Assembly (NCBI RefSeq): GCF_000143415.4
Contig: NW_003314262.1
Span: forward strand, 2,363,046 to 2,427,045
Source: Selaginella moellendorffii
Lineage: Eukaryota > Plantae > Lycopodiophyta
Length of the DNA stretch: 64,000 nt
Direction: 5' to 3'
Positions within the stretch are counted from its first letter, which is position 1. Each line of letters opens with the position of its first letter. Both the position numbers and the translations under genes were made by a program. The notes under the pieces are model-generated. The model saw only the letters and a list, made by a program, of their open reading frames with translations, searched no databases and had not been told where the DNA came from. Below are positions 15,438 to 57,941 of the stretch, piece by piece.

Positions 15438-16635
15438 ATGACAGACCTAAAGAAGAGCTTGTTGGCTATGGCGGAACACGAGGATGGTAAGTAGCTCCTC
15501 TAACTCTTTCCATAGCATGCTAAACACCAAGCCTAGCTTTACTTGGATTTGCATCCATCTAGGTCGCAGCAGCCGCGCAGCAGTGCAATCAAAATTCTCC
15601 GCGCTATGGGCCGTCTACTCGAGAATGTCCGCGAGCTTCTGGATCCTACTCGTGCTAAGCACGCTCACAATGCTCGTGGCTTTTCCGGTGTCGAGCATCC
15701 TCTTCCGGCTCTACTACGTCAATGGCGGCTCCCATCGCTGGCTCCTTACATGGGTGGGATCAGCCGGGTGGCCTCTCCCGGCTATCATCCTCTTGCTCGT
15801 CTATCCAGTCCGCGGCATCGCCCCAACACGCCCGACCTGGACGCTCCTCCTCGCCTACGCGGTCATTGGCTTCCTCAGCGCCGCCGATAACTTCATGTTC
15901 GCCTGGAGCTACGCCTACTTGCCGGCATCCACGTCCACGCTGCTGGCCTCCAGCTCGCTCGCCTTCACCGCCATCTTTGCGTGGCTGCTCGTCCACAAGA
16001 AGCTCAATGCGTCCAGCGTCAACTCCATCGCGATCATGACGGCCGGGGCCGTCATCCTCGGCCTCGACTCGAGCTCCGACAGGCCGCCGGGGACGACGAG
16101 CCGGCAGTACCTCATCGGCTTCGTGCTCGACGTTGCTGGATCAGCGCTCCACGGCCTCATTTTTGTTCTCTCGGAGCTCGTCTTTGTCAAGCTCCTGGAC
16201 AGGAGGGTTGGGTCCGCTGTGCACTTGGTGCTCGAGCTCCAGGTGGTCACCTCGATATTTGCGTGCCTGTTCACGGTGGTGGGAGTGATCGCCAGTGGTG
16301 ACTTTGGAGACATGGGTGGCGAGTCCCAGGCGTTCAAGCATGGCCCCGTGGCTTACTATATGGTGCTCGTTTGGGCTTCGGTGAGTAATCAGCTGGGGGT
16401 TCTTGCCGGGGTGGCAGTGCTCTACTTGACGTCGGCTTTGTTTGCTGGAGTTCTGAATGCGGCTAGAGTTCCATTGACAGCGGTGGCGGCAGTGCTGTGT
16501 TTTGGGGACAACATGAGCGGCTTTAAGGTAATGTCAATCCTTCTTACGATTTGGAGCTTTGGATCCTACGTGTATGGAGGGTTTGTGGAAGAAGCAGCAC
16601 AGCAACACAAGCAAAATGAAAATGACTCACTATGA
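15438..16635 (+). CDS. PUP: Purine permease (PUP family, PUP5-like); intron 15487-15562
   Basis: LFRLYYVNGGSHRWLLTWVGSAGWP, DNFMFAWSYAYLPASTSTLL and about 10 TM segments. A GTAAGT...CTAG intron joins MTDLKK...EDG to RSSRAA. Confidence 0.9.
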
Positions 16636-43210: not shown

Positions 43211-45116
43211 TTAGTAGAAGACGGTCCAGTTGGTGATGGTGAGGAAGAAGACGTCCTGGTCCAGAGGGAACGACTCGTTCGAATAGAGTGTAGTGGTGCG
43301 GGACATGAGCATCGGTCGCATCATCTCGTTGTCTTCGTGCTCCAGAAGGTGGCAGTGGTGAGTGTAGCCGGGATAAGCAGTGGGATCGATCCGGTACTGC
43401 GGCAAAAGGTTGGGAGCAAACTTGACAAAGATCCGGGTGACGTAAAACGGCAGCGACACGGTGGTGTCCTTGAATCCCACTTGGTCCGCGTCCGGCCCCG
43501 TTGGGTAGGCCGTGTAGCAGCTCTCCGGACGTCCGAACGGCGAGCCGAAGGTACAGGACCCGTTCGCCACACGGTCGGGATCAAACGGCTGCTGCTCCAG
43601 GACGAAGAAGTTGACGAGGTGGAGATGCATGAAGTGAGCCACCGGGACGAAGTTGATGAAGGACCAGACCTCGGTGGAGTAGAGCCGGATGATCTCGCGG
43701 ACCTGATCGTCGAAGAGGAGGTGGTCGTCCTGGGACAAGGCCAGATCGGTCATGCGCTGCTCCAGGCCCCGGCTGTAGATGGCGGCCCACGGCACGAAGG
43801 AGAGGTTGACGCCGGTGGTGGCTCCGATGAGATCCACCGGAGCCATGTAGCGGAAGCGCGATGGATCCAGCGGCGTTGGGATGAGATGAGAGCCGGAGGA
43901 CCCCCGGTCCGGGGCTCGTGAGACGACGCGGAAGAGCATGACGGACTGGTTGGCCGGGGGTCCGATTGGAAACGGTGCCTGACCGACGTTCCAGAGCTCG
44001 ATCTCGTCGCCCGGCTCGAAGCTGCTAAAGTCGAAGAGCCAGTCCACTCGCTCCGCGGGGCCGACTCGCATTTGCTGCTGCTGGACCGGCTGGTGCAGCA
44101 TTGCACCATCGGTTCCAATCTTGATGAAGCTCATGCGCTGGCCCCGTGTCTCCAAGACAAAGGTCCGCGCGTTCGCAGCGTTCACGAGCCGGAAGCGATA
44201 GATGGCTGGCTCAACCTCCATGAACGGCCAGACGACACCATTGACGAGGACAACGTCTCCGAGGTACTCGACGCACCACTGCGGATGGACGTCCGGGTCC
44301 AAGCCCACGGTGGGATACTTGATGGAGCCATCGTCGTAGAAGGCCTTGTCCTGGACGACTAGGACGCGGTAGTCTCTCGGCACCCACGACGGCTCCGCCA
44401 TCTCTGATGAAGGCTCGATCACGTAAGCTCCGGCCAGACCAGCGGCGACGTTGAGCCTGGTGATGCCCAAGGTGTGATCGTGGTACCACAGCATGGTTGG
44501 ACGCTGGTCGTTCGGGTAGACGTAGTCCTGCGTCACGTAGGTGTCACCGTGCTCGCCGGCGACGGTGAACCAGGCCTCGGGGTGACCGTCCGACCATCCT
44601 TCGGTCTCTTGGCCGTGGTTGTGGACGACGACCGGGACGAAGCCGTGGCGGGGATTGGCCCAGTGCAGCGTTCTGTCCACTGGAAGCATGTGTTCGTAGT
44701 CGCGGATGTGGTTCTCCCAGCGGACAGTCGCGGTGACGCCTTGGCGAGCTACGAGCGTTGGACCGGGATAGGATGCCGTGCTCTGGCTCGTTCCAAACGC
44801 GTACAAGGGAGTCGCAGGTAAGTCCCTGTGGAGTTTCTGGAAGAAAACTCATCACGGTTTGAAGAAGTTACAGGAAGACACAGACTACCTGGTAGATCTT
44901 GTAAGCTCCCATAGTGAGGCGGGGATACCGGACCAAGGATATGGTGGGCAGTCTCGGCAGGCGATCGACGAACTTTTCCAGAGTTGGAGATGGCGTTAAG
45001 TTGAGGCAGACTTCCGGAGGTCGTGAATTGGAGGAGAAGACATGCTGCTGCTGCTGCTGCGTTGCTTGCACAGCATGCGAGAGGAGCAGAACCAGCAGCT
45101 GGATTGCGAGGATCAT
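43211..45116 (-). CDS. LPR: Multicopper oxidase, LPR1/CotA/bilirubin-oxidase type; intron 44837-44888
   Basis: Signal peptide, LEKFVDRLP, and all four copper motifs: HNHG, WYHDH, HFMHLH, HCHLLEHEDNEMM. Confidence 0.93.
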
Positions 45117-45712
45117 GACGAGCAAAGAAGACGAGTTTGAGAGAGAAAACGCAGGAGATAGTCAGTTGGAGCGAAAGAACTTTAAAAGGAGTGAAAATTC
45201 TTACGTACACTTCGCTTGGAGCACAGCAAGAGTGTCCTGAAAAGCAGCCATATGTTGGAGTCGATTAGGTGCGGTGCTGATTATCGTAGTTTTTGCTTTG
45301 ACGAAGATCCTGTGATCCACGAAGACCCTCACTCTCAGTCATGGCCAGTTGCCTTCGAAAACAACACAAGGAACATGTTGACAAGCTCGTAGACCACAAG
45401 ATCAATGATGTTAGTGCTAGATTTTGGAAACTAAGTTGTGACTGATTATGGAAGCTTTCAAGATAAGAGAGTAAGGTACTTTCAGGAAAAATAAGTCTTT
45501 CTCTTCCCCATGGATGAAGGTTTGAACGTGTGAAAATACTATCTATGTGAAATTGGAGGACTCGTGAATTTTGTATGGTTACGTGGAGATGCCAGGAATG
45601 TCAGTGTTTGCTATAATGAGCCAATCGTGCAAGCAAACAGGCCTTCAATTCCTATCCCCGCTTGTTTGTATCTATAAAGCCTCCACACGGAATCATTGGA
45701 TGCGTCTAAGTG

Positions 45713-45994
45713 ATGAGCTTCACCAAATTTATTTTAATGGTTTGTTTTATGCCTTTCTATGTTACTAAAGCAGGAAAATGCGGGTATTTCTGCGATGCGT
45801 ATAACGATTGTAATGGTAAACTTGCATGTGTAGATCGTATATGCGATGACGATCCAGATCTAGGCACTCATTTTTGCACGGTTGGGAAGTGTAATGCTAA
45901 ATGTGTAACTGATATTGATGCTTTGGGAGATTTGGGATATATTCCACAATTTGGAACTTCTTATTGTCCTGGTAGTGGTAATCAAGGCCAATAA
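45713..45994 (+). CDS. Small secreted Cys-rich protein with one full and one degenerate kissper-like module
   Basis: Hydrophobic signal, then CGYFCDAYNDCNGKLACVDRICDDDPDLGTHFC. TATA box ctataaa about 40 nt upstream. Confidence 0.75.
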   Translation: MSFTKFILMVCFMPFYVTKAGKCGYFCDAYNDCNGKLACVDRICDDDPDLGTHFCTVGKCNAKCVTDIDALGDLGYIPQFGTSYCPGSGNQGQ

Positions 45995-46326
45995 GGATGC
46001 CAATGCTTTGGCTGCAAAGGAGAGCAGGCCATGGAACTAAACAAAAGGATCACTTGTTTACTAAATATGCCCATTAATAAATACATTTTTAGATTAACTT
46101 CACAAGTTACGGCCATGATGTGTGGATTGGGCTGGCTCTTGAAAGATCTTTTGTGACTCAAAGCCTTAACTCATGCTATCTTGGAATTTGATCTTGTGGA
46201 GCGCCTTCTTTTCTTGCTCTAAGCTTAGCTCAAACGAAGTTAAGCCCATTGAACTTCCGGAATAACGAAGAATCTGGAGAGGCATATTCACGCGGACACG
46301 TGGAGCCATGGGGGTTTCTTGTGGCC

Positions 46327-47110
46327 ATGGCAGCAACGGCAGCATTGGTGCCCTGTTTGGCGGCACTTCCACGTCTTGCATCGTCGCCCTCGTCTCCACT
46401 CCGGCACCGTGATCGAGCGGGCATCTTGGGGGATTCGGCTCGGGTTCTTCAGCCGCAGCTCATCATTTGGGGCCAGAGAGCTTCCCAAGGAATTGTGGAG
46501 AGCAGCGGCAGGTGTTTTTGCGGCACCAGAAGCCCCATTGATGAATCATTCACGAAACAGGGAAATGTTGTGCTCTTTGATGAACAAGGTGAGTTTTCTC
46601 TAGTTGATATTGTTTTTACCTTTGGTGATTGTAGCCTCCGAGCTCGAGGAGTTCATCAGGAATGTGCGAGATAAGCTTGTAAGTTCATGTTCTTACTCCT
46701 ACTACTACTCTCTCTCTCTCTCTCCCTCTCTCTCTCTTATTTATCACAAGCTTTCGATCATGATTGCTCCTAGGTTGTTCTTGATATCTCAACCAAGACT
46801 TGTGGACCTTGCAAGTTCATATTTCCCAAGCTTGTCAAGATGAGTGAGGATTATCCTGATGCTGTGTTCTTGAAGATAAATGGGGACTATGACAGTGAAA
46901 CACGAGTAAGACTTTCTACTTACGTTTTCTAATTGCTAGAACGATGCGTATACTAAACAGGCTTTGATGAGGAAATGGAAGATTCGTGCTGTGCCAACAT
47001 TTAGATTCTTTAAAAATGGTGAAATGGTTCACTCTCATTCTGGAGCCAAGGAAGATGACTTGAGAGGTCACTTTATAGCACACTACCATTCAGAAACGGT
47101 GTCTATTTAA
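46327..47110 (+). CDS. Plastid-targeted thioredoxin-like protein (TCGPC active site), 4 exons
   Basis: Ala/Ser/Arg-rich transit peptide. Spliced product VVLDISTKTCGPCKFIFPKL...FLKI...IRAVPTFRFFKNGE. Confidence 0.88.
46708..46737. repeat. (CT)n microsatellite in the thioredoxin intron
   Basis: ctctctctctctctccctctctctctct. Confidence 0.9.
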
Positions 47111-47324
47111 CTATGTACATTGCTTTATTAAAAATTAATTAATCATAGGACGTATCTAAAGCTAGTTCACAGCCAGCTAGAATTTAGTTTTGGATACTGC
47201 CAAACTTTACAGCTGGGATTGTTGTCGAATTTGTAAAAAACAGAATAAAATGTTATATATAAGGCTGATTTTAGAAGTGTTTGCTCATCCCCTCTTTCTT
47301 TCAATAGTTTCTAATAGTAAAATT

Positions 47325-47852
47325 ATGAGTTTTAGTAAATTTATTTGCATGGTCTTTCTTATGTATTTCTCTGCTATAGAAGCAAAAACATGTGGGCAGT
47401 CTTGCAAAAAGAATGAAGATTGTGATGGTAAAATTGCATGTATGCATCATAAATGTGCTGATGACCCAGACCTACGAACTCATATTTGTGGTGGAACTCG
47501 AAAGGATGGACCACCAAAAGATGATGATGGTGGTGATGGCAAGCTTGGAAATTGTAATGATAGTTGTTCCAATAACGATCAATGCTTGGGAAAACTAGCT
47601 TGTATGGGTACTACTTGTGGAGATGATCCAGATGTGGGAACTTCTATTTGTGGTGGTGGTGGTGGTGGCAGTGGTGGTGGTGGCACAGCTGAACCACCAA
47701 GTGAAGATTTACCAGGCACTCCAAGTGATTCTTCACCATTCCCTGATGCTCCAGGATCCCCTATTCCATCACCAAAACCAAATGCCCCTCCATCGGGGAA
47801 GAAAAAAAGTCCTCCCCCTCCCAGGAAAAAATCACCTCCTCCAGCTGAGTGA
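47325..47852 (+). CDS. Secreted protein with two kissper-like modules and a Gly linker plus Pro/Ser/Lys-rich tail
   Basis: Signal MSFSKFICMVFLMYFSAIEA, two C-x3-C-x5-C-x5-C-x4-C-xDDP-x6-C modules, tail with SPPPP. TATA at 47254-47262. Confidence 0.88.
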   Translation: MSFSKFICMVFLMYFSAIEAKTCGQSCKKNEDCDGKIACMHHKCADDPDLRTHICGGTRKDGPPKDDDGGDGKLGNCNDSCSNNDQCLGKLACMGTTCGDDPDVGTSICGGGGGGSGGGGTAEPPSEDLPGTPSDSSPFPDAPGSPIPSPKPNAPPSGKKKSPPPPRKKSPPPAE

Positions 47853-50800
47853 GTTTTATTAATTCTTTCTTAATAAAAAGAATCTTAAGTTTAATTTGTA
47901 ATAAATTTCTCTTGAAATTTTTTAAATAAAAAAGTAAAAATTACAATTTTAAAAGAAATAGACTACAAATTAAGTTAATATTATTTTGTGACTTTTCACA
48001 TGAAAATATATCAATTGAAACACCATATCACATCCAATCAAATTGCCTGCTCAAGGGCAGGGTGAATCACTGCACTGTTCCACAGCTCATTCACTTCAAT
48101 AGCTAGAAGGGTTCCAATTGTCAACTTCTCATATACATAGATGACTCTTAGATGGGTATCCATAATGGAAACCATGAGTTAAGTTATATAATGTATGCAT
48201 AGATGCCACATGTGTATGTGAGATGCTAGGTGAGGAGGTAAATAACATTTTGTCCTCTTTCAGTTTTGCTTCCAAAAGTTTCTAGTGTGGAAGAAGTGAA
48301 GACAATGTTACACCCATAAGAAAAAAATTTGAACATTCAAGACTTTTTGGTTTGCTTAAGCAAAATTTGTAGAGGTGGTAGTGGATATACCTAAGATACT
48401 TGGATATTCTAGGATATTCTACCATCTAACGATTGTTATTTATTTAGTATTCTTGTATTTATAATTTACAAACATGTTTATAATTTAAAAGCTTTCCACT
48501 TTCTAGTATATTCTTATTTATTCTAATGGTAGATATGCAATAATATTAATCTTGATTTATAAATTATAAACATATTTATAATTATCGATCAATTAAATTA
48601 TGAATGACACTAAAACCAAGTGTTGCTACATGAAATGTGCAGCAAATTATTGTAAACAAGAGGATTTGCTAGTCTAGTCTCCACCTAATTACACCTCAAA
48701 ATTCTTGAGATGAAAACTACAGGATATCTAACAATCTACCTCCAAATTATAAAGCAAACATTATTATTCAATGTGGTGGGGTGTATACAGAAAAGTACCA
48801 ACAAAAGAGGTATTGAGTTAGGTTTGGAATAATGTAGTTATGAATTGTGTTAGCACAAACTAGAGTACCATTAACTCATGCTTCAATAGGATAAAAATTC
48901 TGTTGATAGGAAGTTTGTGAAGCATTGGCAATGCATGATCTCACAAGGCTATAGTAGAAGCATATGCTTATAATTCAAAGATGGATTTACACTAATGTAG
49001 AGCCTTACATACTATGCCATATGAACTATGAGTAAATTTTGTTGTAATTATCCAAGACTTAAACATTCCCTATGGTAGCATACTGCAACTTATATCATAT
49101 GAATTTTACGTTCATGCTTTGATATATGGGGCAACTCATTATATAGTCATTTGTGAGTTGTCAACCACCAAACAAACACATGCAATTTTCAACATATACA
49201 TGTGGGCTGTACATAAATTTGGTCAGCCTAGACACATTAGAAGTGACAATGCTCCTAAACATAATGTAATAGAGAATGCTATAGTATCTTGTTAGGGTCC
49301 TTAAGGTAGGAACTTTATTCATGGGATGTCGACAAGAAGCCAATTTTGCCCCTAATATTTTATTATGCATATTCATCACCACCAACCTCCCTATTTCCTA
49401 GCACATTGAGCACTTTTGGCATAAATTCTATAAGTGTGTGGTGTGATTCTATAATATTCAAATGTATGGAGGATATTGGAATATTAAATATTTCTAACAC
49501 GTGGCACAAGCAAAGTCTACAATGTGTTTTTGCACCATCTCTTACGAAAGACATATCTTGCTGGGTTGCCATGTGGAATTTACATGAGGTGCATCCATAT
49601 CATTGAGTTCTTCAAGTTGTCTGATGATCTATTAAACTTGTTCAAGCCATGATATGCATAAACATTATATAATCATTCTTTAAGATTTATAAATGTTGAA
49701 GGTATGACTCTTTTGGTCTATATTGACACTGCTCTTCCTTCTACAACATCAATCAAGAGGCAAGCACTTTAGAAAGTGCAAGTAACATTGTTTCAAACAA
49801 ACTAACAACTAAGCCTTTTTATTAATTAAGATTCTTTTTTTTTAGTTTCCACATGTTTGCTTGGCTGAAACACATGTCCAAATTGTACCCAACCAGGCCT
49901 TAATATTGATTCTCTTGGTTTTGAATTATAGGGATTGCAATTGCATGAGCTTGATGGATATCCCACCTGTGTGGATCATTGTATTGAAACTTTATTATGA
50001 TTTTGAAAGAAACCTAGCATGGCCATTATTCTAGAGTTTACCAATCAAATCAATTTTTCTCTAGTAGTGATTTAATGCATCTTGGAATTTGTGATCAATT
50101 GCAAAAATTATTAGGAAATAATTCCCTCCTGCCTCAACCAAAAATATTTCAGCTTTCTCTAGTGTTTGAATTATCATATATTTATTTTTATAAAGAAAGT
50201 GGAGCTTCAATCTTGCATTTCAATCACAACACTACATGATAAACTTTTTGCACTTCCTCTCCTCTCCATAACAAGCCTACATAAATAAAGACCTAATGAG
50301 AATAAATGGAGGTAGAGGTAATTTGACTCTAAACAATGCCAAGAACAATATTTTAGATGATTCTAGCAATCCTCTCAATCTTCCCTCCATCTCCAATTTA
50401 CAAATTACACATGCAGGCTTGGTTCTAATGGTCTTGTTTATATATGAGCATATAGAGTGTAGTTTGCTGATGCATCAACTTAAACAGGTAATAACCTTCC
50501 ACCAAGTCTCTCTTTCAATCAAATCATAAGTCGCTCTCCACAGGATCTGGATGTAAGTTCCAAGGATTGAGCACTCTACTAACCCAATGAACTCAATAAT
50601 TTTTTAGTGGCACTTGTAGCACCCCAACACAATTGCTAGATATGCAATAAATGCCACCACTGGCAAGTATAGATAACCCCAACATGACTGTTACAAATGC
50701 AATGAATACCACCACTAGGTTAACAAGGCCATATTGCACTAGGTAGTAGCAATTCCTTTGTAGTCTGGATGACTCAATCTGTGTTGGTAGGAGCTTGGAA

Positions 50801-53737
50801 TTACCATGCCATCCTCTTGGTATTCCAGATGCCTGATTTTATTTGCTCCCAATCTGGCTTAAGTGGAGAACCAACTTTATGGTGTCTCAAAGAGGATTCA
50901 AACTATATTCTTCCTTAAAGAGAGTTGCTAATGTAAATGTTTTCCAATTTTTTTGGATTTTTAATTCTTAATTGCATCTTGGTTTGCAAGAACCTTTGGC
51001 CATCCCACCCCAACTATTAGTACAAAAAGATATTGTTTGCTCAATACATATAATTATTTTTTTTATATTTATTAAGTGTTATCTTCTTTAGTTCTTGCCA
51101 TGTAGACATATGCATGGGAGGTCTAAATACCTATCCAAGTTCTTGGGAGTTTATAATGGTGTCAAGTGCACTAATTTCTCGTCCTGTGAAAATGAATCTT
51201 ATAGAGGAAAATGTTGTTATTTCTACGGCCTAGACTTTGCAACTCTATGGGAAACAAAGGTAGCCAATAAAGAAAATTTTGAAACTCAAATATTAAAGCA
51301 TTTGTCTAGCAATTAAAAAAATTTAGTAGGCCATTTAGATGCAATAAAATATGGGTTTACCTCATACAAGCTATGATATTTGTCTCCATTTGCAACTTGA
51401 TCATTGATTTGCAACAAGTCAAGCCACCACAAATCCACTAATAACATTAGATTGCTTACTAAAAGTAAACACGTTCTCTAATGAAGAAGGAAAAACAACT
51501 AAAAGATAAGAATCAAAATCAAAATTATTTATATTATTTATCACCCATTGCAATGCATGTTTTTTTAGGGGTTAAGAGCCCATGATAAATATTAAGCCCC
51601 CACCACTAACTCCTAAAGAGCAATTACCACTAATGGACATAATCAAAGCACTAGTAGTGGAGAGGCTCAAGTTTATTGTTGCCAATGATAAAGATAATGA
51701 GCAAAAGGAAAAAAAAATAGATTATATAAAACATAAATACACAAAGAGCATGATGAAACAAAATTTTCCTATCTCAAACATTCCCACCTTCAGAAGCTAA
51801 TATCAGTAAGTTTTTCTTTCCTTCCTCACCCAAGTCCTCACTAAAAGCATTTTTTACTCTTGTGGTGGTCTTGAATAGTGATGACTATTTTGTATTAGAA
51901 AATCTTACACCACCTTTTGGCAATGAAAACCACTAAACATCATTCCCACTACCAAAAATGTTTCACTCAATAACAACTTAAGTATAAGTAGTTTAGTTAT
52001 GGAGCACTTAATATGTAATGTTGTTAATTCATGTAGTTTTGAGTCGATAAACACTACCATGGGTTGCAACAACACATTAGAGCTTGCCATACAACCTGAG
52101 GCTATTGACAACATGGGTAATTTCCAAGAAACGTGAGTTATAGATTATGCACTGTCAATTTGGAGCTTGTAGTAGTGAATGATTTTGACTTCATGGCACG
52201 TATATGTTAGCTGAAGCACAATGTGCTTGAAACATATTGCATGTCAACACAAGAAAGCGAAGATCAGTTGGAAATACTAAGAGACCATAAAGAGTTCAAG
52301 TGGCTTGGTGGGGGAATAATTCCTCTAATGTATTGTTAATACCAATTCTATGCTATATTAGCAAGAATGGAAATTGGTTCTCAATTGGCTTAGAGTGGAT
52401 GAGGGTAAGTTTGAAGACTTGTTTTACTCATGAGTTATAAAGCTACTTTTACCTCAAACTAGACACAATATTATGACTTCAATATTGGAGATGAGTGCTA
52501 TATAATTCTATGAGTGAAGGTAAACCATTACTTTTTTGCCTTATTATGATAGTTAGTTTATATATTTATAGGCTCCACCATTGCAATAAGGACAAGGTTG
52601 ATAAGTTTTGAGAACTATATAAAAATACTGACACTCTATACTACTAATTCTCAAGGTTTTTAATGCAAAACGTGATGAGCATAGACCATATAAAAGAGCA
52701 TAGGGAAAATTAAAATCTACAGATCTATTGATGAGATTTACAAATAAAAAATGGAAACTAGCCTCATACAATTCAAATTTGTAGATAGCTCCCTAGAATG
52801 AGTTTAAATATTTCCAATTTGCCTTTAAGTCAAAATTGCAAAGTCTCAACTCAAAGGTGGTATATGCTTATAAACTTTATGGAGCCTTGGTTTGGGAAAT
52901 GATAACTATCAAAGCAAGGGGGCCATAAAAGAATGTTGTTTGTGAAGTAATGCTATAAAAATGAAAATGCATTGCTCATGGCTTTGCTGCCACCCTCTTC
53001 CCACAAGTTGGTTACCTACTTAAAATGAAGTCATAATTTGGGACATTTGAAGCTATAAGTAGTCTAACCATAAAATTTAGGCATAACTAAAGTTATAGCA
53101 TCAATAATCACAATCAATCTTTACAATTAAACCGAGATATAAAGGTTTAAAAGATATATTCTATTTAAAGTATCTTTAAATAAATATATGGGAGAAAAAC
53201 ATTATTAGTAAATTAAATTTTTCTCTTTTTAAGTTATAATAGTTTAATTTAAAGGAAGAGTTTCCCACAAAAAACTAAGACTATGAAAATGAATTAAACT
53301 AATAAAAATTACTTCACAATGTTGTGCTGGTGCCAAAGTTTCTCTGCTTGACATTGTTATAACATGATTGAGTGGTGAGAGTCACTACTTATTAAAGGCA
53401 CTAAATATAATAAATTCATACATTTAGCTAATAATATAGAAACTGAATTTTTTTAAATGATCCATTTAGCACTAATTTAAAAGACTCTTGCATTAACTAA
53501 AGCCATTAATTAGCTGTGAAGTGTAATTTATCTGTGTGAAGTGCCCAATATTGTATATTATAAATGTCCAAATTAGGCTTCTTTAATTCTGGTCAAAGTC
53601 AATAGTCATATCTAAAAGGTATTCAAACATGGAAGCTAATGCAGAATTTGGCATGATTGCAAATATAAAATAAATTAACTCTATATAAAAGGCTATGTAT
53701 GAGGGCTCTAAACAAGTCTTCAAACATAACATTTGCA

Positions 53738-54268
53738 ATGAGATATACAATCTTGGTTGCATCTTTTCTTCTCACCTGTCTCTACACTGTTGTGGATGCT
53801 AAAAAATGTGGAGCTTCATGTAACAAAGATGATGATTGCGATGGTAAGATTGCATGCATGGATAATGTTTGTGCAGATGACCCAAATATGAACACTCACA
53901 TATGTGGTGGTAGTCGCAAAGAAGGGCCAGCAAAAAGTGGTAGTGGTGGCAATGGTGCTAGCCTTGGCAAATGTGGCACATCATGTTCCAGTAACGACGA
54001 ATGTTCTGGAAAACTAGCATGCATGAGCAGCTTTTGTGGGGATGATCCTGATGTGGGAACTTCCATCTGTGGCAGCAATGGCAATGATAATAGTGGCAGT
54101 AACACTGGCAATAAGAACCCAACTCCTCCAGACACTCCATTCCCTAATATTCCTGATCCAGATATGCCACTCCCCAGTTCTCCCAATGAAGGTCCATCTA
54201 CTAGTGACTCTCCATCTCTTCCAAAGAAACCCCCTCCAGGGAAACCCAAGTATCCAGTGCCATATTAG
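53738..54268 (+). CDS. Secreted protein with two kissper-like modules and a Pro-rich tail (paralog of 47325-47852)
   Basis: Signal MRYTILVASFLLTCLYTVVDA, CGASCNKDDDCDGKIACMDNVCADDP...HIC and a second module, tail ending KPKYPVPY. TATA at 53682-53690. Confidence 0.88.
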   Translation: MRYTILVASFLLTCLYTVVDAKKCGASCNKDDDCDGKIACMDNVCADDPNMNTHICGGSRKEGPAKSGSGGNGASLGKCGTSCSSNDECSGKLACMSSFCGDDPDVGTSICGSNGNDNSGSNTGNKNPTPPDTPFPNIPDPDMPLPSSPNEGPSTSDSPSLPKKPPPGKPKYPVPY

Positions 54269-54353: not shown

Positions 54354-56300
54354 TTACATGCCAAGCCGGGCTAGCGCATCACTAATGGTACTCATGTCCC
54401 AAATCACCACCTTCCCATCCATGCCTGCATAAAACAAATGCCAGGGGTTACATTAGCAACGCTTTGAGCTTGATCTACAGTTGCTTCGTACCAGAAGTGC
54501 TAAATTTTCGTATCTCCTGCTCTCCAGGTGGAGCTAGTGGATTAAGAAGTCTGCACATGAAACAACACTCGGTACCAGTAACTACAAAAGCCGAGTGATA
54601 CTCACGTAATGCAATTGTTGTGATAAGTTCCTGGAGCACTCGAGGGAGATTCAGCGGCAACACCACGCTTAGCTTGCCCATAGAATTTCCCAAACGCTTC
54701 AGAAAACTGCCAAAATCAATCCGTCGGTTTACAATAAACCAAAACTGACCCGTCTTACTTGTGTCGAAGCTTTAACGTCTGATGCGGGTGTCTTCCCTTC
54801 ATCCAGAAAACGAACAAAGTTCCTAAAAAATATGTAGCTTCAAAATTGTATCAAATTCTCTCAATACTAACCATGTTCCTGTATCATCAGACGCAAAAAG
54901 CATTGGGTTGCAATCAAAACCACCAGCGACTAGACGTTTCTCTGATAGAAACAAAACCTGAAAGAAAAATGGAAAGAGAGAGTTAGAAACAAAAACGCTT
55001 CAGACATAAACCCGCATACATCACGTAGAGGTAGGTCCCTGAGTGCTAATGTCTGAGCGATTGGTGAAGGACCAACGTCATCTATAAAATGAATAGTTGA
55101 ATCGTGGCCTAGAACATAAAAATTAGAAGAGGCATTCAAAGCTAGAAGCATGCTTCTCCTTACCAACATATGCCAAACTCCTCCCACTGGGTGACCATTT
55201 AACTCCGAAAGCCCACCCCAATGCCAAATCCAGCTGCACCAATTGCTGCAATAAAACCGCAAAGAATAAACTTCTAAACACCTTTATCCTGAATAAAGCT
55301 CCTACCTCCCCAAACCGAATCTCTCCAAACGTTGTAGTTGCAGCGCTCCTACAGTTGATAGAGTCATTACAAAAGAAAACAAAGCGAAACGGAGAGCGGA
55401 CCTGGAATCAACACCCTTGATGTACGCAGAAAAAATCCTGCACTTGCAGTCAGTAGATGTCGTAGCTAGTAGCACCTGCAATCTAAACGAACGTTTGGCA
55501 TAAGGTTCTTACAGCTGAAAACAAAAGAAAACAACATTATTGGGATGCCATGCGACACCAGTCACTGTGGAGCCGTGCTTCTTCCTGATTATCTTGCTCA
55601 CCCACCTGGGAAAAGTTGTGTTACAAAACTAGAATTCAAAACAGACAAAGACAGCAGACCAGTTATTATCTTCCTCGTAGTAGCAAACGCAGACGCTCTT
55701 CGCACCACTAGCAACAGCAAATTTGTTCTCTGGGAACATCGAACCCCGTTTAAGTAACGAAAACTAGCAAAGCCTCTTACCTCTGGGGCTCCACTTCACA
55801 GATATAGCAGCACGATTTATCCGCAATATAACCAGCGTGGGCTGCCATACATTCTCTTCTAGCTTCCAGACGTAGCTGCAGAAGAGGTGAAAAACATCAG
55901 AAAAAGGGACAAAGAAAAACCCGAAGTACGCATCAACTTACGAATTCCTATCGTGAGAAACAGTGACAATGTAGTTCGAGACAGGTGCCCAATCAACTCC
56001 TGAAACGAGCTGATCGTGCTAAAGCCACAAAAGAGAATGAGATAGCAAGAGCGAGATTTCCACCTCGTTACTTACCTTTTGAAGGACGTGGAGTCGCTGC
56101 CACACAGCGCTTGGAGCTGGCGAGGCATTGTAAATGTGGACTTCGTTATTCGTGCAAACCGCGATCACTGCGAAGAACACACATTGTTTGATGTAAAATT
56201 AAAACGCGCAAGAGGAGGAAGAATTCTTACTTGTCAGATCCACATTCCAGGCGTGGCCGCTGATGCATTGCGCCAATTGATGCGACGCCACAGCAACCAT
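54354..56300 (-). CDS. ARPC1: Arp2/3 complex subunit 1 (WD40, p41)
   Basis: [30 protein letters not shown]-type exon, [40 protein letters not shown]. Confidence 0.92.
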
Positions 56301-56619
56301 ATCTGCAGAGCGCAAAATCTCACCCATTGTGATCACGCGCGTTGAGCAGAGAAAGAATTGAGAGAAGGAATGCCGAGACCTAAGAGATCTAACACTATTT
56401 CCTGGCAAGTTCTAGAGCAATATTTTATCAGCGCGAAGCAAGCGATCTTCCCACTAAACAAATGCGCTAGCTAGCTAGCGATCATACCTGACAGCGATCA
56501 GCAATCTTCCAGATCGAGACAAAATCCGTGCGTGCGCGCTGTCGCCTTGCGCTGTCCCAGCCCTATCTAGAACCAAAAACCCTAGCAAAGTACTTGGAGA
56601 GTTCCTAATAGAAAGACCT

Positions 56620-57941
56620 TTAGTATTCTTCCAGATCGTCATCCTCGAAAACCGGCCTTCCCCACACGATTAATTCCGGGCGAAGGCGGCGAAAGAACTC
56701 CTCGTCTTCTTCGTCGCGAAAGAATTCCTCGACCTCCTCCTCTTCTTTCTCTTCTTCTATCGGTTTCGAGAGGCTCTTGAGCACGAAGCTTTTGGGATCT
56801 TTGATCTCGAAGTCGTACCGCTGGAGCGATCTGCCTTGCGCCGATACGTGACAGATGCTGCCACGAAGAGGAGAAGATCAGATCATCAGCGTGACACGAA
56901 ACGAGAAACGGAGAAAGGACGAGAAAAAAGAAATGCTAGAGCTTACCAGATGTAATAGAGCTGATCCGTGGATTGTTTTTGGACACGCCCGATGAGCTCC
57001 ACCTGGAAGATTCCACCGATGCACACGACCGGCCTTGGAAGACGAAATGTCTGCAGTGAATCAGCCTGTTCACGCAAAAACAAGAGAGAAGCTTAAAACC
57101 TTCTATATATCACAACACTAGTCCATACCTGTTCCACGGGATACATCGGCGAAACATACTTCCAAACGTAGTTCCCATCGGGGTGAGGATTGCTCCAAGA
57201 GTGTCCACCAGGAGCACGGCAAGCCTGGTATCCAAAGTAGAATCGAACGAATTTCGGCGAGTAGATTGGGCTGCCGTATTGAAAGAAAGCTGCAGCGCAT
57301 ATTGCAAAGTTAGAACTTTGAAAAGAGAAAGAAAGGAAGTACAAGCACACCTTCAAAAGGTCTCAACTTTATCTCCTCCACGACACACAGAGGTGTGACC
57401 ATCCGGTAAGTCAAGAACTCTGGAACAGTTTCCAATTTCTGGCCTGTGCTAGACCAGTACGACGGCGAGCCTGACGAGAGCCGCTTCGGGTGTGGATAGA
57501 GCGTCTGAATTACCTCCTCATTGGGATTGTCGGTGCTCGAAGCATGCAGTGCATTCCAGATGTAGCTGCTCCTCGTCGACGATGTCCTCATCAGGGAGTA
57601 GTAGAAGTCACAGAACACCTTGTGCTCGCGTCTCAGAATGTCCTCCTCAGACCGCGATTTAGAAAGCTCTACAGTAGTACAGTCGACACCGCTGGATTGC
57701 TCAGCCACCTCCCGAAACACTTCCAGCTCTGGAAATCGGATCATGCACAGCCGCCTCCAAAGTCGGCCATCAACAACTGCGGCACGACAATTAGCCAAAA
57801 CTCGAGCGCCTCAAGGGACAAGATCCTACCGAGTCTGTGCCACGAGCGGCACACTGCACCGGCACGGGCGACATCCTCGTCGGTATCCAAGCACCCAAGA
57901 ATCTGTAACATCGTGTCGTCATCCAGCCGCTTCACATCCAT
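56620..57941 (-). CDS. F-box protein (At4g00755-like)
   Basis: N-terminal F-box (LDDDTMLQILGCL...VCRSW), ASSTDNPNE...SYWSSTGQ, PIYSPKFVRF, FRLPRPVVCIGGIFQVELIGRVQK; acidic tail. Confidence 0.88.

Follow-up and report, generated by a model that had tools for sequence, protein, structure and literature searches.

Can a kissper module, the N-terminal peptide of kiwellins, be encoded as a secreted protein of its own, without the kiwellin barrel behind it? The question is raised by three intron-free open reading frames (ORFs), designated g1, g2 and g3, which span positions 45713 to 54268 on the plus strand of a 64-kb stretch of the Selaginella moellendorffii genome (contig NW_003314262.1, positions 2,363,046 to 2,427,045). 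This whole stretch is referred to as the window, and all positions below are counted from its first letter. The three ORFs are probably members of an S. moellendorffii family of stand-alone, secreted cysteine-rich proteins of the kissper (knottin) type.

The g2 and g3 proteins share one plan, in which a hydrophobic leader of 20-21 amino acids (aa) is followed by a module, a linker, a second module and a tail. The modules are 37 aa in length and the linker between them is 17-18 aa long and consists largely of Gly and charged residues. In g1, three of the six Cys and approximately seven codons of the second module are gone, and the ORF stops before any tail. Three paralogs with a leader and six-Cys modules had been described in the original prediction, which was made from the DNA sequence alone: two with tandem modules and a Pro-rich tail (SPPPP, KPPPGKPKYP) and a third with a collapsed second module and no tail. 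All of these elements were reproduced, both as ORFs and as a pattern, with SPPPP (and an SPPP) in g2 and the KPPPGKPKYP stretch in g3. Signal peptides were called from hydropathy and from small residues at positions -1 and -3 only. The parts of the three genes are as follows.

45713-45994 (+), g1, 93 aa, with an N-terminus resembling a signal peptide, one intact module, a decayed second module and no Pro-rich tail
45773-45883 (+), intact kissper module of g1, from pattern and alignment
47325-47852 (+), g2, 175 aa, counted from the first ATG past the TATA box
47325-47384 (+), predicted signal peptide of g2 (hydropathy, small residues at -1/-3)
47385-47495 (+), kissper module 1 of g2
47496-47546 (+), Gly/Asp linker of g2
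47547-47657 (+), kissper module 2 of g2
47658-47849 (+), tail of g2, Gly-rich and then Pro-rich, with the stop at 47850-47852
53738-54268 (+), g3, a 176-aa ORF
53738-53800 (+), predicted signal peptide of g3 (hydropathy, small residues at -1/-3)
53801-53911 (+), kissper module 1 of g3
53912-53965 (+), linker of g3
53966-54076 (+), kissper module 2 of g3
54077-54265 (+), tail of g3, Asn/Gly-rich and then Pro-rich, with the stop at 54266-54268

Modules, tail and missing barrel

When the window was searched in six frames with a regular expression, exactly five intact modules were found, all of them within g1-g3 and on the plus strand (45779-45877 in g1, 47391-47489 and 47553-47651 in g2, 53807-53905 and 53972-54070 in g3). 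The modules have the Cys spacing C-x3-C-x5-C-x5-C-x4-C-x10-C together with D-D-P ... G-T-x-I-C, and 13 positions are invariant across the five when aligned (the six Cys, G-K, A, D-D-P and T).

In the Protein Data Bank (PDB), g2 matched residues 3-45 of kiwellin 4x9u with an E-value of 1.5e-5, the next PDB match being at E=0.11, and g3 matched the PDB kiwellin at E=0.009 and no other PDB entry at E<=10. A profile built from the five modules gave 35 matches at E<=1e-3 among 1.84 billion representative proteins (best E=1e-24). These comprise other double-module proteins of Selaginella, numerous kissper-kiwellins and a small number of further proteins that contain a kissper. The profile of the tandem protein gave 171 matches, and nearly all of the 120 listed have PF24300 (Kiwellin-1) behind the matched module. 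Well over 100 kissper-kiwellins with PF24300 were retrieved by the profiles, matched solely over their N-terminal module. A single-sequence word search with g2 against 5.8 billion proteins (E<=0.01) returned no match, not even g2 itself, since g2 has no annotated entry and a knot of this length is too short for such a search.

In the AlphaFold model of mature g2, both modules were predicted with a beta-hairpin in each and a predicted local distance difference test score (pLDDT) of 85-90, and the linker and most of the tail had a pLDDT of 40-60. The top Foldseek match in the PDB was kiwellin 4x9u_A (38 columns, root-mean-square deviation 2.2 A, 47% identity, probability 1.00, E=0.05), followed by squash trypsin inhibitors and spider-toxin knottins. 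For so small a domain the Foldseek E-values are weak, and the case for homology was therefore based on sequence. The match to 4x9u, the profile matches and a predicted fold nearest to 4x9u show together, as the original prediction had proposed, that the modules of g1-g3 are true kissper homologues.

Nothing in Pfam scored above threshold for g1-g3; the sub-threshold matches were EB, DUF7107, WAP and Dumpy, with no kissper family among them. On DUF7107 (PF23416, gathering score 24.6 bits), g3 scored 13.5 bits and g2 had no match. The relative P0004 scored 24.8 bits on the same family, and precomputed DUF7107 matches exist for P0047-P0049. The DUF7107 and kissper families seem to be related, though g2 and g3 fall short of the threshold. 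A lone ESM Atlas match of g3 to 'hirudin' (0.76) was treated as noise.

The kiwellin barrel family PF24300 was not matched by g1-g3, whereas the control kissper-kiwellins P0010 and P0020 matched it at 1e-49 and 8e-55, respectively. When full kissper-kiwellins (P0010, P0012, P0020 and P0030) were compared with the window by tblastn, no barrel was found at E<=1, and the alignments covered only their first ~75 residues. The same search with a tandem-kissper receptor kinase from Apiaceae found no kinase anywhere in the window. No transmembrane segment or glycosylphosphatidylinositol (GPI) signal was found in g2 or g3. The proposed absence of a kiwellin barrel is thus borne out in the window, as the genes end in stops and no barrel was found across the 64 kb. 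A downstream barrel exon, which the original prediction had named as the finding that would speak against it, was present neither within the 9.7 kb past g3 nor within the 16 kb past g2.

In place of a barrel, g2 and g3 have tails of 63-64 aa, which start Gly/Asn-rich, continue Pro-rich (30-31% Pro) and end in a Lys/Pro patch. Pro, Ala, Ser and Thr (PAST) make up 56% of the tail in g2 and 49% in g3, with eight and four [AST]P dipeptides, respectively. The whole mature proteins reach only 34-36% PAST and the biased region is ~50 aa, the criterion for proteins of the arabinogalactan protein (AGP) type being ~45-50% or more with scattered [AST]-P dipeptides; the bias is thus AGP-like within the tail alone. 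The g2 tail contains one SPPPP, one SPPP and no Tyr, and the g3 tail lacks SP3+ motifs and has its two Tyr at the extreme C-terminus; the repeated Ser-Pro3-5 and Tyr cross-linking motifs of extensins were found in neither. A GPI-anchored AGP was rejected on the hydrophilic C-terminus (Kyte-Doolittle mean of the last 20 residues, -2.06 in g2 and -1.43 in g3). The hydroxyproline-rich glycoprotein (HRGP)-like stalk that had been suggested for these proteins is a likeness of composition only, the tails being rich in PAST. Wall tethering by the tail is no more than a reasonable guess.

A second likeness was found within the kiwellins themselves. In 103 kissper-kiwellins the segment from the kissper to the next Cys, that is, the linker between kissper and barrel, has a median length of 14 aa and consists of 31% Gly, 22% Ser and 20% Pro. 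The tails of g2 and g3 start like these linkers and then continue, and they are as much like an extended linker of this kind as like an HRGP.

Duplication, selection and gene structure

Synonymous sites between g2 and g3 are near saturation (dS 1.3-1.8). The dN/dS ratio in their modules was 0.18 overall and 0.12 and 0.17 for the individual modules, and pS (0.62) and pN (0.21) were approximately 5.8 standard errors apart by hand calculation. In the tails, the alignment of which is uncertain, pN (0.52) was lower than pS (0.74). DNA similarity between the paralogs ends at the borders of the coding sequence. Judged by these substitution patterns, g2 and g3 are old duplicates in which the knots have been kept by purifying selection. 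The g1 gene is nearer to g2 (dS approximately 0.6-0.7), with a dN/dS of 0.51 in module 1 and approximately 1.5 in the remnant of module 2, and the two are collinear at the DNA level from the leader through module 1. By its sequence g1 is a decaying or at best single-knot derivative, and it looks degenerate instead of a designed short form.

Each gene is preceded by a TATA-like element.

45673-45679 (+), TATA-like box of g1 (TATAAAG), 40 nt 5' of the g1 ATG
47254-47262 (+), TATA box of g2 (TATATAAGG), 71 nt 5' of the g2 ATG
53682-53692 (+), TATA box of g3 (TATATAAAAGG), 56 nt 5' of the ATG at 53738

The distance from TATA to ATG is thus 40-71 nt in all three genes, and an AATAAA lies 20-82 nt downstream of the stop (20 nt in g2 and 21 nt in g3). 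Together with the selection on the knots of g2 and g3 and a similarity confined to coding sequence, these signals speak for real genes and against chance ORFs. An in-frame stop at 45707 lies just before the g1 ATG. The earlier start first given for g3, an in-frame ATG at 53699, was abandoned: it lies only about 10 nt past the TATA box starting at 53682 and is therefore unlikely to be transcribed. The ATG at 53738 is the likely start of g3.

The locus could also be read as a set of silent relics, kissper-kiwellin or kissper-kinase genes of which, after loss of the downstream exon, only an unexpressed 5' part is left. The state of the public annotation is in keeping with this. No public protein model for g1 or g2 was found in the collections searched, and g3 is represented only by a truncated one, P0002 (136 aa, NCBI/UniRef). 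This model matches 53858-54265 (+) with 100% identity; its first residue is an internal Met of module 1, and it therefore lacks the leader. Such a record, with two of three genes absent from public annotation and the third truncated, is typical for small cysteine-rich peptide genes. The decay of g1, with its dN/dS of approximately 1.5 and three lost Cys in the second module, would also suit relics, as would tails that begin like kissper-barrel linkers and the apparent truncation of some angiosperm models for 'barrel-less' kissper proteins. However, at a dS of 1.3-1.8 the g2 and g3 genes still have reading frames open over 175-176 codons, with the leaders, the two DDP motifs and all 12 Cys in place, and the dN/dS of their knots is 0.12-0.17. 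The double-knot and tail plan recurs at other Selaginella loci, and TATA and poly(A) signals are present. We consider it unlikely that g1-g3 are silent relics.

Several points nevertheless weigh against g1-g3 as a family of secreted kissper proteins. The modules are acidic (pI 4.0-4.5, except for module 1 of g2 with ~7), unlike classical cationic antimicrobial peptides, a class that was ruled out on this ground. The GC content at third codon positions of the three genes is low, only 0.20-0.31, and the neighbouring genes lie in DNA of ~50% GC. The tails of g2 and g3 show little sequence conservation, and extensin-type SP3-4 motifs occur in g2 alone. Exact copies of g1, g2 and full-length g3 (from either start) were absent from a collection of 15 billion proteins that includes transcriptome assemblies. 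The leaders are putative, as judged by eye and by hydropathy only, and the function of the proteins is wholly inferred.

Kissper modules elsewhere and the alternatives they suggest

Two further S. moellendorffii models, SELMODRAFT_430105 and SELMODRAFT_431140, consist of a leader, two kissper modules and a short Pro-rich tail with no barrel, and are annotated as 'hypothetical protein'. The C-terminal half of SELMODRAFT_406856 and SELMODRAFT_431322 follows the same tandem-kissper plan in a model fused to an Eaf7 domain. This fusion is a wrong gene model. These older models (P0001 and P0036) contain Eaf7 and the tandem kissper, compared to Eaf7 alone in the RefSeq models of the same cluster (P0037 and P0038), and the kissper gene at the Eaf7 locus is probably now unannotated. 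The other Selaginella tandem-kissper models were the closest matches of the five-module profile (E=1e-24 to 5e-20). They are 33-44% identical to g2 and g3, and differ from them in tails of 20-29 aa and a linker of 4-5 aa, compared to 17-18 aa. As to the possibility, raised with the original prediction, that the architecture is already an annotated and widespread family, it is not unique to g2 and g3: other Selaginella loci share it as 'hypothetical proteins', and few barrel-less kissper proteins occur outside Selaginella. What this cluster adds is the double-knot form with a long tail and the evidence of selection.

The few barrel-less kissper proteins outside Selaginella among the profile matches include a 101-aa protein of Gossypium, in which one module precedes a Pro-rich tail and which UniRef lists as 'Carboxypeptidase A inhibitor-like domain-containing protein', and a 108-aa protein from Ginkgo. 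Some of the angiosperm examples are likely to be truncated models. In Apiaceae, receptor kinases of 525-529 aa were found that consist of a signal peptide, two kissper modules, a transmembrane segment and a kinase. In P0007, P0040 and P0042 (Apium graveolens and Daucus carota) the ectodomain is made up entirely of the two kissper modules. The Daucus XP_017235062.1 and Apium XP_074325755.1 proteins are annotated as G-type lectin S-receptor-like kinase B120, yet they have no lectin domain. Three 115-aa Apiaceae proteins (P0006, P0041 and P0043) part from the receptor kinases right after module 2 and therefore look like read-through of exon 1. A kiwellin of Oldenlandia corymbosa (P0049) has two kissper modules before the barrel; by its sequence, then, module duplication appears in barrel-linked forms too.

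A tree of the modules, rough and unrooted, was built from 37 columns, and no barrel-linked modules from Selaginella are in it. Module 1 of g2 paired with module 1 of g3 and module 2 with module 2, indicating that the internal duplication predates the split of g2 and g3. All Selaginella modules fell outside a supported clade of ferns and seed plants. The duplications in Apiaceae, Oldenlandia and P0004 were each separate, the Apiaceae one lying inside the seed-plant kissper clade. Module 1 of g1 had a very long branch and grouped with the second modules, a placement taken as an artefact because the DNA of g1 and g2 is collinear from the leader through module 1.

The receptor kinases suggest a different role for the S. 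moellendorffii proteins. Kissper modules act as ectodomains in the Apiaceae kinases, and by analogy g1-g3 might be secreted ligands, decoys or co-factors for receptors with a kissper or kiwellin ectodomain, serving in signalling and not in a direct antimicrobial role. No receptor gene is present in the window, and the argument is drawn purely from the sharing of a domain. A role of this kind is quite improbable.

The structural matches raise the further possibility that the proteins are knottin-type protease inhibitors, similar to carboxypeptidase inhibitors or squash inhibitors, guarding the apoplast from proteases of microbes or herbivores. Squash trypsin inhibitors were the Foldseek matches after kiwellin, with a TM-score to the target of 0.6-0.72, but at E-values of 0.45 or worse. 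The relatives P0003 and P0021 reached 21.6-21.7 bits on Pfam CarbpepA_inh against a cut-off of 25, and the cotton relative bears the inhibitor-like UniRef name given above; g1-g3 themselves had no match to CarbpepA_inh (PF02977) even at E<=1. In potato carboxypeptidase inhibitor the inhibitory tail directly follows the last Cys. In g2 and g3, 63 residues trail the last Cys, and no reactive-site loop was identified. Protease inhibition is a very unlikely account of these genes.

That the ORFs are first exons of larger genes with barrel or kinase exons downstream is essentially excluded within the window, for although the 115-aa Apiaceae proteins indicate that such artefacts exist, no barrel or kinase similarity was found there at E<=1, all three frames end in stops and then AATAAA, and what follows is a thioredoxin gene after g1, 5.8 kb with no ORF of more than 86 aa after g2, and minus-strand coding fragments from approximately 54.4 kb after g3.

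The thioredoxin gene lies 3' of g1, between g1 and g2 (approximately 46250-47100, plus strand), and has introns of approximately 45-75 nt; its exon at 46774-46905, the one exon searched, matches PF00085. The 5.8-kb spacer between g2 and g3 (47853-53680) is AT-rich, with approximately 33% GC. The minus-strand fragments 3' of g3 (approximately 54400-57800) are convergent to g3. They look like a candidate ARPC1-type WD40 gene; single-exon searches gave no match. An F-box-like ORF lies at 57310-57941. On the other side of the cluster, an uninterrupted ORF of 531 aa (43211-44806, minus strand) encodes a multicopper oxidase, for which the best relatives of solved structure are the bacterial spore-coat protein A (CotA) laccases (E=8e-79) and not plant laccases. 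A multicopper oxidase of this type is unusual for a plant genome. Farther away, in a retroelement area, 15575-15973 (+) gave a weak tblastn match to the module-2 and tail region of g2 (E=8e-6, 27% identity). The kissper Cys pattern was not found in this segment, and the match is probably due to low-complexity Pro/Gly sequence.

Proposed function and comparison with known systems

In the reading of g1-g3 as stand-alone secreted kissper proteins, the g2 and g3 products would enter the secretory pathway and reach the apoplast, each knot held by three predicted disulfides. The tail may be an elongated form of the Gly/Ser/Pro linker between kissper and barrel, probably acting as a spacer that may be hydroxyproline-glycosylated, and with its basic end it might attach the protein to the acidic cell wall. 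By analogy with the proposal for kiwifruit kissper, the paired knots would probably be binding or membrane-active heads in defence. Kiwifruit kissper is released from kiwellin by proteolysis and forms voltage-gated ion channels in lipid bilayers (cited in PMC9813671). Channel formation is the only activity reported for kissper, and its role in the plant is stated to be unknown (PMC9813671).

The same review of the family sorts kiwellins by the presence or absence of a kissper domain and regards kissper as no more than an attachment to Kwl1 kiwellins; duplications and larger fusions of kiwellins are listed in it, and it is silent on kissper-only genes and kinase fusions (PMC9813671). A literature search that combined kiwellin with Selaginella, with knottin or with receptor kinase ectodomains retrieved no relevant paper, most subscription journals lying outside the search. 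The stand-alone architecture of tandem kissper modules with a Pro-rich tail is provisionally regarded as undescribed in the literature.

Kissper-only genes whose knots have been under long purifying selection speak for an independent function of the knot. Across land plants kissper is found by itself, in double form, with a Pro-rich tail, and in front of a barrel or a kinase, and it therefore behaves as a mobile extracellular module. The g2 and g3 genes are natural constructs for testing the knot for channel formation, protease inhibition and binding of effectors or receptors. A bolder possibility, which we hold to be unlikely, is that kissper was ancestrally free-standing and carried on a Gly/Ser/Pro tail, in a functional, wall-associated double-knot protein of early vascular plants whose 'knot plus linker' was later fused to the barwin-like barrel and, separately, to kinases. 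If so, g2 and g3 would be living examples of the module before fusion, and kissper function would be testable without the kiwellin body.

Among known systems, the knottins (squash trypsin inhibitors, potato carboxypeptidase inhibitor and spider toxins) resemble g2 and g3 in being small three-disulfide modules with a beta-hairpin, and were the next-best structural match after kiwellin. They differ in that no significant sequence match, no CarbpepA_inh match and no evident reactive loop link them to g2 and g3. The chimeric hydroxyproline-rich glycoproteins are secreted, as is predicted for g2 and g3, and have a PAST-rich region, to which the SPPPP and SPPP of g2 and the Lys/Pro/Tyr-rich end of g3 may be compared. 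In contrast to those glycoproteins, the g2 and g3 tail is short, non-repetitive and unconserved between the paralogs, with no YXY motif and no GPI signal.

The tandem-kissper kinases of Apiaceae share with g2 and g3 a signal peptide, two modules split by a linker (Pro-rich in Apiaceae) and the lack of a kiwellin barrel. In the kinases, however, a transmembrane segment and a kinase follow the modules, and their duplication was separate from that of Selaginella in the module tree. The closest likeness is to the kissper of kiwifruit, the 39-residue N-terminal peptide of kiwellin (Act d 5, PDB 4x9u/4pmk), and to the kissper of the Kwl1 type, which have the same six-Cys spacing and DDP..GT.IC as g2 and g3. 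As in g2 and g3, the kissper of kissper-kiwellins is followed by a segment rich in Gly, Ser and Pro. In kiwellins this segment is a 14-aa linker that leads into a double-psi beta-barrel, whereas in g2 and g3 it is a Pro-rich tail of ~63 aa ending in a stop. Unlike the kissper of kiwellin, the knots of g2 and g3 are encoded by a gene of their own instead of being cut from kiwellin, and they are tandem-duplicated within the protein.

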